DNA from: Octopus sinensis
Lineage: Eukaryota
Reading direction: 5' to 3'
NCBI RefSeq assembly: GCF_006345805.1
Contig: NC_043000.1
Span: 95,418,001-95,482,000, forward strand
DNA: 64,000 nt
Part shown: positions 1-57,799 of the stretch, in pieces
Numbering within the stretch: position 1 is the stretch's first letter
How the letters are laid out: every line of letters begins with the position of its first letter
The notes under the pieces: generated by a model
Seen by the model: only the letters and a program-made list of their open reading frames with translations
Databases searched by the model: none
What the model was told of the DNA's origin: nothing
Position numbers and translations under genes: made by a program

Positions 1-1280
1 ATGTATACAATTATATCAATGTATATGCTAATATGTGTGTGTGTGTGTGTGGTGTGTGTGTGTGTGTGTGTGTGTGTGTGTGTGTGTGTGCCCGTGTGTG
101 TTTGTGTATATAAACTTATACATATACATAAGCGTGTATATACACAAAATACATGCATATATATATATATATATATAGCAAAAGAGGGAGTGGTGTTTCC
201 ACGCAGGAAAAAATAAAGGAAAATGTGTTGTTGAAAATGCACTTAAATTACAAAACTCGTAAATGTTTAAAATACATTTATTTAAATATATACCAAACTA
301 GTTTGAACAATATTTTTTTGTTTATCAATAGTATAAGTGCAAAATTAGAAAAAACATCGTTATAAGTTTCAATTTTGACAAATCAAAATTTTTCAATGTT
401 GACAAACTAAAATGTTTCAATGTTGATAAATTAAAATGTTTCAATGTTGATAAATTATCATGTTCAAAACAGAAGGTGTAAGTTTGAAATTAAAACTGTA
501 TATTAATTTGTTAGAATGTACAAGGTTCATTAATTTCAGTGGTGGTCGACAAGTCATACTGAAAATAACAAGTGTGAGGATTAAAATAGCAAAAAAAGGA
601 AATTTGGTTTTCGGTTTCTCAGATCTTTAAACAGTCGCTTTCGCTTGTAATGGTATGTTTAGGGAAAGATGTATTTATAAATTTTTTTCTGCGAGAGGAT
701 CTGATTTTGATTCGTTAAAGAATTGATGAAGTTTTTTTTTTCCGTTGTCAAGCTTGTCGTTCTGCTTGGTTGGTTTCCTTGCGGATACGGTTATAGGTCG
801 TTCCGGTTGGTTGTTTCGCTTAAAGGATCTTTTCGTTGTATTCGCTGAAGTTCGGTTTTGATTGGTTTTTACGACGAGTTAAGAAATGAATGAATAACAA
901 GTGTGTATGACGCTGAAAGAATTAGAAGGCCAAACAATGCAAAACGGACCGTTATTTTAGGTCCTGAAATATTGGATACGTAAAAGACCGACAGTAACAA
1001 CGATAACGATCCGTCTTGCATTGTTTGACCTTCTAACTCTATCACCGTCACATTTCATAGAGCAAACCACATTTTATTGTATGTATATATATATATATAT
1101 ATATATAACAAACGATAGAGACGGAAATGGAACACACGAACAACTTTATTGCTCACAACGATTGTTTCCACACACACACACACACACACACACACCACAC
1201 ACACACACACATATATATATATATATATTATTGGTGAATTGAAGAAATGGAGCTGAACGAAGATTGAACAGAAATCGTTT

Positions 1281-1373
1281 TATTTCATTCTACACGTGTT
1301 TCGAAAGGCACAATTTACCAAAATCCGATTGAATAATGAGACCATATTGTGTCTTTCTCTTCAGGAAGAAATA
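1281..1373 (-). ncRNA. Type I hammerhead ribozyme (mirror copy in palindrome)
   Basis: Exact reverse complement of 1541-1633. Confidence 0.85.
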
Positions 1374-1540
1374 GGAAATCCGTTGGAAAAAACAAAAACA
1401 GAACAGAGGCGGAGCAAAACAAATCGAACTAGGCTCCTAAGAGCCCATGGCAAAACAGTTTTGCCATGGGCTCTTAGGAGCCTAGTTCGATTTGTTTTGC
1501 TCCGCCTCTGTTCTGTTTTTGTTTTTTCCAACGGATTTCC

Positions 1541-1633
1541 TATTTCTTCCTGAAGAGAAAGACACAATATGGTCTCATTATTCAATCGGATTTTGGTAAA
1601 TTGTGCCTTTCGAAACACGTGTAGAATGAAATA
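1541..1633 (+). ncRNA. Type I hammerhead ribozyme
   Basis: Stem I TATTTCTTC/GAA(T)GAAATA; core CTGAAGA 1550-1556; stem II GAAAGACACAAT/ATTGTGCCTTTC; GAAA 1612-1615; palindromic stem III CACGTG; predicted cleavage after GTA at 1623. Confidence 0.85.
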
Positions 1634-1924
1634 AAACGATTTCTGTTCAATCTTCGTTCAGCTCCATTTCTTCAATTCACCAATAATATTTTAATTTCAA
1701 TTATCCGCACCAACGCACGGTTGTAACACCATATGGTTGTACCTCCAACCGTGCTGTTTTCTGCTGTGATTTTTGCTACCAAGGTATCGGTTAAACTTTT
1801 GATTAATCTGCTACAAGATTATTCATCTTTCTATTTCACATAATATATATATATATATATATATATATATATATATATATATATATATATATATATATAT
1901 ATATATATATATTATTATATATAA

Positions 1925-2027
1925 AGGAGCTTCACAGACTATACTGTTTCATTCAAGAGAAATCTTCAGGAAGCTGCTTCCTGAAGATTTCTCTTGATGA
2001 AACAGTACTATCCTGTAGAAGCTCCTT
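1925..2027. ncRNA. Imperfect palindrome (axis 1975) carrying two minimal hammerhead motifs
   Basis: Plus copy reads GCTTC CTGAAGA tttctcttgat GAAA CAG tactatc CTG T A GAAGC. The minus copy has the better stem II (TTC/GAA) but lacks position 17. Confidence 0.7.
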
Positions 2028-54050: not shown

Positions 54051-54084
54051 TTAAGATTATACTCTGTGCAGTATTTGATTATAT

Positions 54085-54490
54085 TCTTTTATTCTTTTAT
54101 TTGTTTCAGTCATTTGACTGCGACCATGCTGGAGCACTGCCTTTAGTCGAATAAATCGACCCCAGAACATATTCTTTGTAAGCCTAGTACTTATTCTATC
54201 GGTCTCTCTTGTCGAGCCGCTAAGTGACGGGGACGTAAACACATCAGCATCGGTTGTCGAGCGATGTTGGGGGGACAAACACAGGCACACAAACATATAT
54301 ATATATATATATATATATATATATATATATATATAATACGACGGGCTTCTTTCAGTTTCCGTCTACCAAATCCACTCACAAGGCTTTGGTCGACCCGGGG
54401 CTATAGTAGGAGACACTTTCCCAAGATGCCACGCAGTGGGACTGAATCCGGAACCATGTGGTTGGTAAGCAAGCCACTTACCACACATCC
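54085..54490 (-). mobile_element. Family A SINE, tail-to-tail with the CR1-like LINE
   Basis: Full-length copy. Confidence 0.9.
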
Positions 54491-54614
54491 ACGTGTGTGT
54501 TTGTAAATGAGAGGTTAGTGTGTCTGTGTGGGTTTTTGTTTTGTTGTTTTATTGTTCTTTCTTTGTTCTTTTCTGTTTGTTTTCAAATATAAACGAGACT
54601 ACGGCAGATTACTG

Positions 54615-54870
54615 GATATTAATAGTTATCGCCAAGCTAATATAGCAGTACAGAAATATAGGACGAATGCTGAAATACCCTGAAACTAGTCTGCAGATGC
54701 CTGACTAGCAAGGGGAAGCGGCTGCCTTCCCCTGTTCGAAGGTTATAATGGACACAGGTTCGTGTGTTACATAGCTAGCTAGAGGCGATGGCCTCTTGGA
54801 ACTAATCAACGTCAGCATTCGTTCTATATTTCTGGACTGCCATATTAGCTTGGCGGTAACTATTAATATC
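54615..54870. repeat. 256-bp element with 59-bp inverted termini and three internal hairpins
   Basis: 54615-54673 and 54812-54870 are reverse complements with 4 mismatches. Confidence 0.8.
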
Positions 54871-57799
54871 TTTTTTGTTTTGTTTTCATTATATTTGAAG
54901 ATGCCTAGTTACTACGAAACCACTTTCATATCTGATTGTTTCTCAAAACTACGGAGTAAACGGATTTGCTATCTGATTTCCAGCGCTTTTTTGTTTGACG
55001 GTAAGTTGCATTGAGGTGACTGCAGAAAAAAAAATACTTTCTCTAGTAACATTCGTTATTGTTTATGAATTTTTGTTCGAGCTTAGGTTATCAAGAACTT
55101 ATCAGTTACATAACATATCAGTTAATTTAAAGCCTTTACTTTTTTTTTTCAGTTAAACGATTGCGATAACTCCAACAGCGACAATAAATATGGTAACAGA
55201 GAATGTTTCGAGTAATATATGAAGAATCTAGAAAACCGTTTGAGTATCTAAAAAAACCAAATATTTAACATTGATAGTTGTATGTCAAAATTTTATCTCA
55301 TATATTTCTTTCTTTTTGCATACCAAATCTAGTGGTATATATATACATACATGCATACATATATATATGTGTGTGTGTGTATACATATATATATATATAT
55401 ATGTATACATATATATATGCATATTCATATCATATATATATGTATGTATATTCATGTATGTTTTTATTGTATGTAGGTGTATATATATATATACATGTAT
55501 ATACATATATATATTATATATATATGCGTGCGTGTGTATATATATATATATAATATATATAGATATATACATATATACATATATACATATATATATAGTT
55601 AAATATACTTAAATATATATATATATATATATATATATACTTAGATGTATATATATACACATATATACTTATATATATATACATATAATATATAACATAT
55701 ATATATATATACTTATATATATATAAATAAATATATATAATATATATATATATATATATATATATATATATATATATATATATATATATATATATCTCTA
55801 TTTATATATATATATACATATTAGTATATATTATACATTGATATAAGATCCTGCATCTTAAAATATTAAAGAAGAGCAAAATTTTGATGTACCACTATCA
55901 ATATTAAATATTTTGTTTTTCTGGATAATGAAATGTGTGTGTGTATGTGTGCACGAGCGTATAAATGTATGTATATATACGCATGCATGCGTAAGTGTTT
56001 GTGTGAGTATACGCGAGAATATGTTTATGTGCATTTGTGGTCTTCAGTTTGTTTTCCAATTTGCTGGTAATATATTACAAGACATAGCGAGTGCGAACAA
56101 GTCTCTTTTTTTTTTTTTGCATATTTCAATCACAGATGTCGTTTCCTCATCAACTCGAATTGCGCGCGACGTGTAGATACGTGTAAATATTAAGATAAGT
56201 GGTTTAAAGATATACACATACATATATATATATATATATATATATGCATGTATGTCTATTTAAATATACTGGTTTATGTGTGTATACATATGCATTTGTG
56301 TGTGTATGACAGTGTGTCTGCGTGGGGGATGTAAATATGTACATATATACATATACTCATATATATATATATATATATATATATATATATATATATATAT
56401 ATATATATATATATGCGTGCGTGTGTATAAATATACTAAAAAAGTGTGCGTATATACGTATGTATGTGTGTGTAAATCTGTGTGTGGGTGGGTGTGTGGG
56501 GGTGTTTGTGTATTTATTCAGTTTTACTTCAAGATTTCTCGGCAATAGAGATAGAGCCGGTTTCTAATCTAGATTCATAGCTCCTTCATTAGAATTTCAA
56601 CATCATCAGAGTATTTCTGTCTGTTTCTGTGTATGTGTGCAGTATTTGAAGCAAGGGCATGTGCAAATTTTTATGTTTTGTTTTATGTGTGTATTCTCAT
56701 ATACATATCTAGAGATGTGCATATATACTTAAATACTAAACTTCTAATAAGTTTTACATACTTTAACAGTTCCATTGACAACTTGAATCTGTTATCTTCT
56801 AATTACGTACGCATTTATGTATATATTTATGCATGCATGCATGTATGTATGTATGTACGTATGTATGTATGTATTTATGTATGTATGTATGTATGTATGT
56901 ATGTATTATGTATCTATGTATGTATGTATGTATGTATGTATGTATGTATTTATGTATGCATGTATGTATGTATGTATGTATGTATGTATGTATGTATGCA
57001 TGTATGTATTACGGCGCTCTGAAAATGTACTTGATGATGAACATGAAGTCACTCGGGAGTGAAGTCCTTAAAAGAAATCTTCCAGAGTGACTCTTTCACT
57101 TCCTTGTTATTTGTTATCGTGGTAATACCTATCTCAATGACTATAAGAAAAGTTGACGTGGCTTACATACTACGGAAAATGCATGACCTCTAAACCACCT
57201 ATTTAGATATATTTATAATTTTTTTTGTATCAATTTTTCCTATACCATCATTAAGATGCACGAACTGAACTTTATTCATCGCCGTTTTCCATAATAACTT
57301 CATATTGTGCCCAACTCATTGATGTGATTAATCATTTAATATTTTACGCACAAAAAGTCAAGACACTTCAGCTAGGTTTTTGCTTGTGTCTGATTTAAAC
57401 AGCGATAGCTATCAAGTTATTTCTGTGAGCAGATCGGTAAGCAGTAATCAAGCTCTGAAAAGTGGTCAATCAGCTTTGAAATAAATCAGAATATTCCCTT
57501 ATTTTTTCCTGCATGCGAAGAGAACTCCATGATGTATTTAAATTTGTTTACCTTCGACATTCAAGGTTTACAAACTATAGGTAAAATTGAGTATATTTAT
57601 CTTAGATAATCTAATACACACTTTTTGTGCATGAAATATTCATTAATTACATAATCACGCCACTAATATGCCATATTTAGATTAGCTTAACCATTTCAGC
57701 TAGAACTTGGTTTGGTTTTAATTTGAATAGAGATTGCTATCCACACCCGAAAGGTTGGACCAGGTTTCTGCTTTTTAGATGTTTGTTGGTGCAAGACCC

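Follow-up and report, generated by a model that had tools for sequence, protein, structure and literature searches.

What kind of element carries the hammerhead ribozyme motifs that recur among the (TA)n microsatellites of a 64,000-nucleotide stretch of the Octopus sinensis genome (contig NC_043000.1, positions 95,418,001 to 95,482,000; hereafter, the window) is the question that this locus raises. A preliminary description had proposed about ten sequence-unrelated families of such motifs, forming a non-autonomous system mobilized by Penelope-like elements (PLEs). We recognized about six real hammerhead families along with five decayed or doubtful ones. The islands in which they lie are probably PLE-type terminal modules inserted into (TA)n, either severely 5'-truncated or solo pseudo-long terminal repeat (pLTR) remnants of several PLE families or retrozyme-like non-autonomous derivatives mobilized in trans, and each module bears a minimal type I hammerhead, or a relic of one, near its 3' part.

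The window was scanned with a strict RNAmotif-style descriptor (CTGANGA, helix II of at least 3 bp, GAAA, A15.1...U16.1, H17 other than G, and helix I of at least 5 pairs), descriptors of this type being the field's method for such motifs (PMC7229834, PMC8557442), and with a relaxed version that permitted one irregularity in helix II. The strict descriptor returned four loci, at 1291-1364 (-), 1550-1623 (+), 14344-14377 (-), and 44167-44239 (-), compared to a mean of 0.03 in 100 dinucleotide shuffles. Nine loci were obtained with the relaxed descriptor, which added 25695-25732 (-), its duplicate at 27122-27159 (-), 31886-31918 (-), 44658-44726 (+), and 39972-40055 (-), versus 0.16 in global and 0.21 in 1-kb block dinucleotide shuffles (200 of each, maximum of 3). 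The motifs are thus denser in the window than in dinucleotide-shuffled sequence. The relaxed match at 39972-40055 (-) is doubtful, having a non-palindromic helix III, and its lack of (TA)n context together with its weak helix II suggests that it is probably due to chance. When this match, the palindrome mirror copy, and the segmental-duplication copy were left out, six independent motifs remained: 1550+ (with 1291-), 14377-, 25732- (with 27159-), 31918-, 44239-, and 44658+. The CUGANGA and GAAA boxes are exact in 1550+, 1291-, 14377-, 25732-, 27159-, 31918-, 44239-, and 44658+. Of the families first proposed, those at 1541, 14338, 25687, 31877, 44156, and 44654 therefore stand as full motifs, whereas those at 1976, 5195, 14733, 15405, and 19436/20446 are non-canonical. 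The CTGANGA box by itself occurs 42 times in the window, compared to 21.3 ± 4.3 times in shuffles, an excess that is partly due to unrelated repeats; a ~200-bp repeat, for example, holds a chance CTGAAGA box (3436, 3671), so the raw core count is inflated. Allowing one core mismatch yielded four extra loci against ~2.6 loci of all kinds in shuffles, and because this class shows no excess, the decayed relics rest on homology and context rather than on statistics. A core at 56609, near the end of the region delimited in the preliminary description, was rejected as a hammerhead since it lacks helices.

All of the intact motifs are type I hammerheads of the minimal kind, with helix I open and helices II and III closed. 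Helix I comprises 6 to 9 pairs and helix II 4 to 11 pairs, A15.1 and U16.1 are present throughout, and position 17 (H17) is occupied by A, C, or U. At 10.1-11.1, motifs 1550, 44239, and 25732 have a G-C pair, motifs 14377 and 31918 have A-U or U-A, and motif 44658 has an A.C mismatch. The canonical hammerhead of family A (1541-1632, +) contains CUGAAGA at 1550-1556, GAAA at 1612-1615, U16.1 at 1622, and A17 at 1623, with cleavage predicted between 1623 and 1624; its helix I pairs 1541-1549 with 1624-1632, a long helix II spans 1557-1611, helix III is the palindrome CACGUG, and a mirror copy is found at 1282-1373 (-; C3 1364, H17 1291). A second member of this family (43977-44314, -) consists of a canonical hammerhead at 44159-44247 (C3 44239, H17 44167, helix III CAUAUG) followed by a 66-nucleotide (nt) tail. 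Hammerhead C, also canonical and minimal (14337-14384, -; C3 14377, H17 14344), reads AGGCCUG CUGAUGA AUAC-GUAA-GUAU GAAA UCACUGUGA UA CAGGUCU and is situated in a 456-bp island between (TA)n tracts at 14047-14074 and 14531-14592. Family B is a palindrome (44309-44859, 82%) with a near-canonical hammerhead in its right arm (44650-44735, +; C3 44658, H17 44726, helix III CAUAUG), where the A.C mismatch at 10.1/11.1 is followed by four GC pairs; the copy in its left arm (44441-44525, -) is broken by GAAU in place of GAAA and by a TA insertion. The old palindrome of family H (31787-32336, 67%) keeps an intact minimal hammerhead in the left arm (31876-31927, -; C3 31918, H17 31886, helix III ACGU), and its mirror copy in the right arm (32207-32242, +) is decayed, with CUGAUGG as its core. 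Family G (25640-26310, -) is composed of two head-to-tail units of ~340 bp that are 73% identical; the downstream unit contains an intact hammerhead (25687-25740, -; C3 25732, H17 25695, helix III UAUCAAUA), and in the upstream unit the motif is decayed and deleted. The second copy of hammerhead G (27114-27167, -; C3 27159, H17 27122) was made by a 1.43-kb tandem segmental duplication (25227-26677 and 26661-28097, 97%) that copied the island along with its flanking microsatellites.

Helix III is palindromic or nearly so in every intact motif (CACGUG, CAUAUG twice, UCACUGUGA, UAUCAAUA, and CG), and in these motifs the proposal of minimal type I hammerheads with a palindromic or near-palindromic helix III was borne out. 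Thermodynamic prediction by ViennaRNA cofold gave an intermolecular helix III, with dimers 3 to 11 kcal/mol more stable than two monomers, and several monomers were predicted not to fold into a hammerhead. A BLAST comparison of all islands against each other produced no cross-family matches, and at that level the families are unrelated, as had been stated. Nevertheless, 1457-1689 can be aligned with the reverse-complemented 44100-44250, starting at the ribozyme and continuing to the 3' end; 1550 and 44239 are distant homologues, and 44658 may be related to them too. Between 1550 and 44239, a helix II of ~10 to 11 pairs has been kept through at least three two-sided changes, and RNAalifold with three sequences recovered helices I and II, in which 8 of 17 pairs have changed at both positions. 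The natural covariation reported earlier is limited to this compensatory change between 1550 and 44239; between unrelated families the argument is circular because the families were chosen by their pairing.

The window is AT-rich (25-48% GC), and (TA)n accounts for 6.6% of it in 96 tracts. Ten of the 12 independent islands lie between (TA)n tracts 194 to 933 bp apart, whereas only 27% of random positions fall in islands of 1 kb or less (binomial 8e-5 for 10 of 12); family F, which is bounded by (ATT)n, is an exception. The islands are thus mostly bounded by (TA)n as first described, but the size range of 150 to 450 bp given for them was too narrow.

Self-comparison of the window revealed inverted pairs at 1225-1689, 1911-2039, 14800-14956 with 15410-15566, 19439-19578 with 20344-20483, 31787-32336, and 44309-44859. 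The ribozyme points outward in each of the six (1/64 by chance), and the copies are therefore head-to-head. The family A pair is a perfect 465-bp palindrome (1225-1689) whose left end abuts a (TA)n tract at 1211-1228 and whose arms, identical at 232 of 232 positions, meet head-to-head around a single central A at 1457, with a hammerhead facing outward in each. The identity of the arms suggests a very recent event, and the palindrome is compatible with cDNA snap-back or template switching. In the second member of family A, a terminal segment of 51 nt occurs twice (44106-44156 and 43977-44027, 96%, 129 bp apart), so that a pLTR-like partial tandem is formed, which reaches as far as (TA)n 43824-43960. 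The distance from hammerhead to element end ranges from ~66 to ~380 nt. The same 465-bp palindrome, if transcribed through, would give ~230 bp of double-stranded RNA (dsRNA), and its segment 1373-1541 scored 68 bits on both strands against the Rfam plant family MIR847 (gathering score of 184), a long-hairpin artefact. A spurious 98-residue open frame across 1225-1689 was used as bait for other copies of family A, and the protein database search found nothing.

The five remaining loci of the preliminary description fail because of a mutated core, an absent helix II, or an extra base. Family I is an imperfect palindrome (1911-2039, 89%) between (TA)n 1843-1912 and 2110-2157; its motif at 1981-2017 (+), the locus listed as 1976, has helices I and III, CUGAAGA, GAAA, and UA, with no real helix II (UUUCUCUUGAU), and in its mirror copy at 1969 (-) position 17 is occupied by G. 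Non-repetitive segments at 1690-1842 and 2040-2109 separate the palindromes from the next (TA)n tract, and the latter begins with TTACTCTGC, the same 9 nt as the start of the family D element at 15392, which is either a shared 5' end or chance. Family J has two copies that are 93% identical, at 2170-2339 (-), in a 194-bp island between (TA)n tracts, and at 5133-5303 (+). Both (2290 and 5195) have the non-canonical core CUGUGGA, the 2170-2339 copy retaining helix II, GAAA, ACGU, and UU; a hammerhead with an inserted core was considered for them and rejected, the core box being incompatible. No tRNA-like genes were detected by ARAGORN, which gives no support for a tRNA-derived origin of family J. 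The family E relic at 14718-14775 (-), corresponding to the locus at 14733, has the core GUGAACA, in which C3 and G8 are mutated, and keeps helix I (UUGUCA/UGACAA), GAAA, AUAU, and UU.

Family D is represented by a full copy at 15391-15700 (+), between (TA)n 15353-15390 and 15701-15713, and by an inverted copy at 14800-14956 (-) that is 93% identical to 15410-15566 and is joined head-to-head to a 5'-truncated plus-strand copy at 14959-15188. The motif of the full copy (15404-15462; C3 15411, H17 15457), listed earlier as 15405, is at the 5' end of the element with 240 nt downstream, has a nearly palindromic helix III (UCCGGGA), and carries an extra A between helix II and GAAA that is common to the inverted copy; the motif of the latter (14895-14956) also has A9 changed to U. 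The two copies of family F are inverted and 89% identical. The left one (19430-19578, -), abutting (ATT)n, has an intact CUGAUGA (C3 19471), a mismatch in helix II, and a deletion of helix III and the 3' part of helix I; the right one (20344-20495, +), abutting (AAT)n, has its core mutated to AUAACGA and retains GAAA-CG-UU-GUGUU. Family F (19436/20446) is therefore canonical only as the consensus of two differently damaged copies. An imperfect palindrome with no hammerhead motif (20085-20327, 84%) is located between these inverted copies and their (ATT)n/(AAT)n tracts.

A possible source of the mobilizing machinery had been seen in the PLE at 62445. This element (62445-64000, +) extends from the reverse transcriptase (RT) thumb to the GIY-YIG domain, with coding similarity over 62496-63908 and a 3' untranslated region (UTR) that runs off the window. 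Its 5' truncation falls directly at (TA)n 62356-62443, and its frame is shifted at least twice; the element is a dead copy. A 1.33-kb tandem duplication rich in microsatellites (59898-61225 and 61127-62450, 94%) ends exactly at its truncated start. The best named relatives of the fragment are from Octopus bimaculoides and Argonauta hians, and the protein family carries KCGRSNCATC, a CX4CxxC linker, upstream of GIY-YIG. The CX2-5CxxC linker has been assigned to Neptune, Nematis, and Naiad PLEs, and its link to (TA)n targeting has been hypothesized (PMC8557442). A contig (L001) that is 97.6% identical to the fragment extends its 3' UTR, and there a decayed minimal hammerhead is present (UUGAAAA GC-UACAC-GC GAAA CCGG UA). 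Because the PLE at 62445 is a truncated, frameshifted pseudogene whose 3' UTR has no sequence in common with the islands, it is not their driver, and the suggestion that it could mobilize them is not supported.

The architecture of PLE ends was seen at a related cephalopod locus (L002), where two 5'-truncated PLE copies lie head-to-head at 8671-11469 between two ~100-bp (TA)n tracts. Each consists of an open reading frame (ORF), 118 nt, a canonical minimal hammerhead, 56 nt, and (TA)n, and a 37-nt tail is found at one end only. Our descriptor recovered the hammerheads 118 nt after these ORFs, which provides a cross-validation of it. Once the ORF is taken away, the layout of these copies is that of the islands in the window.

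The preferred reading, PLE-type terminal modules inserted into (TA)n, draws together motifs above chance level, a (TA)n context, an inverted and tandem layout, and a like layout of real PLEs in a related genome. In the mechanism that we propose, a PLE RT/GIY-YIG protein with a CX4CxxC linker would nick (TA)n and copy the element RNA by target-primed reverse transcription, and template switching or snap-back of the cDNA may then give rise to head-to-head palindromes and partial tandems. Within multimeric or read-through transcripts, the hammerhead would cleave 3' of H17 and trim the RNA to unit length, probably acting as a dimer by way of its palindromic helix III. We infer self-cleavage, dimer action, and mobilization by PLE proteins from these features, and a snap-back origin would account for the palindromes.

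Several known systems bear on this assignment. Minimal type I hammerheads in PLE pLTRs were described by Cervera and de la Pena (2014), as cited in PMC8557442 and PMC7229834, and pLTRs, inverted 5'-truncated and tandem copies, tails, hammerheads, and a microsatellite/(TA)n bias have all been reported for PLEs (PMC8557442). The motifs of the window resemble those of pLTRs in being type I, in their CUGANGA, GAAA, and UH boxes, in a very short or palindromic helix III that suggests dimers, in the lack of loop-loop tertiary contacts, in their position near the 3' end of the element, and in the occurrence of head-to-head and partial-tandem copies. They differ in adjoining no PLE ORF, in having no sequence in common with the available PLE 3' UTRs, and in a helix II that is often long (~50 to 55 nt in families A and B) versus 2 bp in the PLE control. 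With the Neptune, Nematis, and Naiad PLEs, the PLE family of the window shares the CX2-5CxxC linker, a likeness drawn by linker motif; the copies in the window and L002 likewise abut (TA)n, and inverted 5'-truncated copies and a 37-nt tail at one end are found. Naiads lack canonical hammerheads (PMC8557442), so the elements here resemble instead the C-terminal endonuclease-positive (EN+) clades.

Animal non-long terminal repeat (non-LTR) retrozymes provide a second comparison. Invertebrate genomes each contain type I motifs by the thousand, minimal as well as canonical ones, which fall into many families (16 in a coral; PMC7229834). Retrozymes have been described as derived from PLEs, 57 families being reported in Xenopus and solo monomers being numerous (bioRxiv 10.64898/2026.07.22.740005). 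Like the islands, they are short (170 to 400 nt), AT-rich, non-coding units with a type I hammerhead (PMC7229834; bioRxiv 10.64898/2026.07.22.740005), occur as many families per genome with solo monomers common, and are proposed to be both derived from and dependent on PLEs. A retrozyme-like head-to-tail repeat is found only in family G (two ~340-bp units, one hammerhead intact). Unlike retrozymes, the copies in the window are mostly single or inverted rather than in tandem arrays, and their hammerheads are minimal rather than canonical with loop 1/loop 2 contacts; lodging in (TA)n and perfect palindromes are features not stressed in the retrozyme papers (PMC7229834; bioRxiv 10.64898/2026.07.22.740005). 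The system is thus not new in kind, given that many minimal hammerhead families per genome, a (TA)n bias of PLEs, and PLE-derived retrozymes have already been published, and in the literature searched we found no description of such elements in cephalopods.

Short non-coding repeats whose type I hammerheads have a short helix III and are most active in cleavage as dimers also include newt satellite 2 and Schistosoma Sm-alpha. Whereas those are high-copy tandem satellites or SINE-like, the copies in the window are dispersed, inverted, and located in microsatellites. For amphibian hammerheads, this dimer behavior has been reported (PMC7229834).

Several results weigh against the assignment of the islands to PLE-type modules. 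Five of the claimed families lack a canonical core. With RF00163, RF00008, and the other models of clan CL00010, Rfam gave no hammerhead match in the window at the gathering threshold, and a search at E ≤ 10 brought none in 14300-14520 (221 bases) or 44100-44900 (801 bases); the whole-window E-value scan was swamped by miRNA-like matches on (TA)n tracts and on the long palindrome. The Rfam negative is uninformative for minimal hammerheads, because the PLE-linked control of L002 is also missed, scoring only 12 bits versus a gathering score of 48.5. A long perfect palindrome, if transcribed through, would compete with ribozyme folding. By tblastn, PLE coding sequence is present nowhere in the window except at 62496-63908, no coding similarity adjoins any island, and no intact autonomous PLE was found. 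No island matches the PLE 3' UTR of the window, L001, or L002 by BLAST; without such sequence identity, the link to PLEs is structural and contextual rather than genealogical. Finally, 84 kb of comparison loci from other cephalopod assemblies (L002-L005) contain no copy of any window family, and their only convincing hammerheads are the two PLE-linked ones. The local density of ~9 motifs in 64 kb exceeds that of these loci and may be local or species-specific.

The alternative that survives best is a sub-case of the same explanation, in which the islands are only severely 5'-truncated copies of several autonomous PLE families, dead on arrival, that retain the 3' UTR and its hammerhead; it would do away with the non-autonomous system first proposed. 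We regard this as quite possible, at somewhat under an even chance. The spacing at L002 (hammerhead 118 nt past the ORF and 56 nt short of the end of the element) agrees with it, as does the 232-nt arm at 1457-1689, where 84 nt separate the hammerhead from the inner end and 66 nt from the outer one, as expected for truncation inside a 3' UTR; moreover, a 5' truncation at (TA)n is seen in the coding PLE at 62445 too, and most families are seen once or as a single inverted pair. On the other hand, family G is a non-coding head-to-tail pair of ~340-bp units reminiscent of retrozymes, the family D motif is at the 5' end of its element with 240 nt downstream, island flanks show no coding similarity, and the distances from hammerhead to end vary from ~66 to ~380 nt. 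Families G and D point rather to dedicated non-autonomous elements, and the 232-nt arms of family A are compatible with either origin. The non-autonomous, PLE-mobilized system proposed at the outset is partly supported by the PLE-type layout, the (TA)n context, and the CX4CxxC linker, but 64 kb cannot distinguish dedicated families from severely 5'-truncated PLEs.

Far less favored is the explanation that the palindromic islands are foldback elements or miniature inverted-repeat transposable elements (MITEs), that is, DNA transposons targeting TA in which hammerhead-like motifs are incidental or were captured later. Such elements do have long inverted repeats in TA-rich flanks, of which the perfect 465-bp palindrome would be an example, and TA is the classic Tc1/mariner target. 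We consider this very unlikely: full hammerheads are ~45 to 130 times commoner than in shuffles and point outward in six of six pairs, as they do in PLE inverted pairs; the arms meet at a 1-nt center with no bracketed internal region; BLAST detected no terminal inverted repeats or other termini common to the families, with target-site duplications being unreadable inside (TA)n; coding PLEs in L002 have a like layout; and single and tandem non-palindromic copies are also present. Chance matches in AT-rich, repeat-rich DNA, to which the missing Rfam hits, the one-mismatch class that is no commoner than in shuffles, and the chance-like relaxed match at 40055 might point, are hardly credible, because the nine zero-mismatch motifs against 0.16-0.21 (a count reached in 0 of 200 shuffles, maximum 3) already contradict them, the motifs coincide in position with (TA)n islands and inverted repeats, helix II has undergone compensatory changes, and Rfam is insensitive even to the PLE-linked control.

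A bolder extension of the preferred reading would hold that in octopod genomes hammerhead elements dependent on PLEs are unusually dense and diverse and have been active recently, with the perfect snap-back palindrome in (TA)n as their preferred integration product. It is suggested by approximately one motif per 6-7 kb and by the palindrome with 232 of 232 identical positions, and we think it unlikely. If it were true, transcription from either flank would put a sense ribozyme in the distal arm, and read-through would yield a long dsRNA hairpin, a possible small-RNA or ADAR substrate. 

Independently of this extension, genome-wide confirmation of the hammerhead modules would add cephalopods to the animals seeded with self-cleaving ribozymes carried by PLEs and their derivatives. 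The features that most deserve follow-up are the difference in density relative to the comparison loci and the perfect palindrome. Several questions about minimal ribozymes could be approached with the compact natural set that the window contains (one perfect palindrome, one tandem pair, and distant homologues showing compensatory changes): whether cleavage occurs only in dimers, what the ribozyme does for its retroelement, and by what route PLE integration generates palindromes and comes to target (TA)n.

Other repeats also populate the window. A ~430-bp repeat is present in at least eight copies, at 54084-54492 (+), 9764-10162 (+), 12991-13432 (-), 50861-51293 (+), 43072-43490 (-), 36687-37066 (-), 38977-39396, and 47564-47793, and by eye its head looks tRNA-derived, with a B-box-like GGTTCCGGGTTCAGTCCCAC on the reverse strand. 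Inside each copy is a (TA)n/(CA)n microsatellite, and some of the window's (TA)n tracts therefore belong to this repeat and are not PLE targets. The interspersed repeats of the window recur in O. bimaculoides loci at 70-88% identity, the ~430-bp repeat at 70-85%. The ~200-bp repeat forms tandem and inverted arrays at 3275-3688, 34765-35600, 37805-38810, 41185-41531, and 58428-58675, and is found in the O. bimaculoides loci L004 and L005 as well. An ORF at 52440-53318 (+) encodes an RVT_1 reverse transcriptase domain (E 1.6e-22) that is not PLE-like, and a GC-rich block at 28000-31500 (45-48% GC) is, by eye, another putative retroelement of the long interspersed nuclear element (LINE) type.

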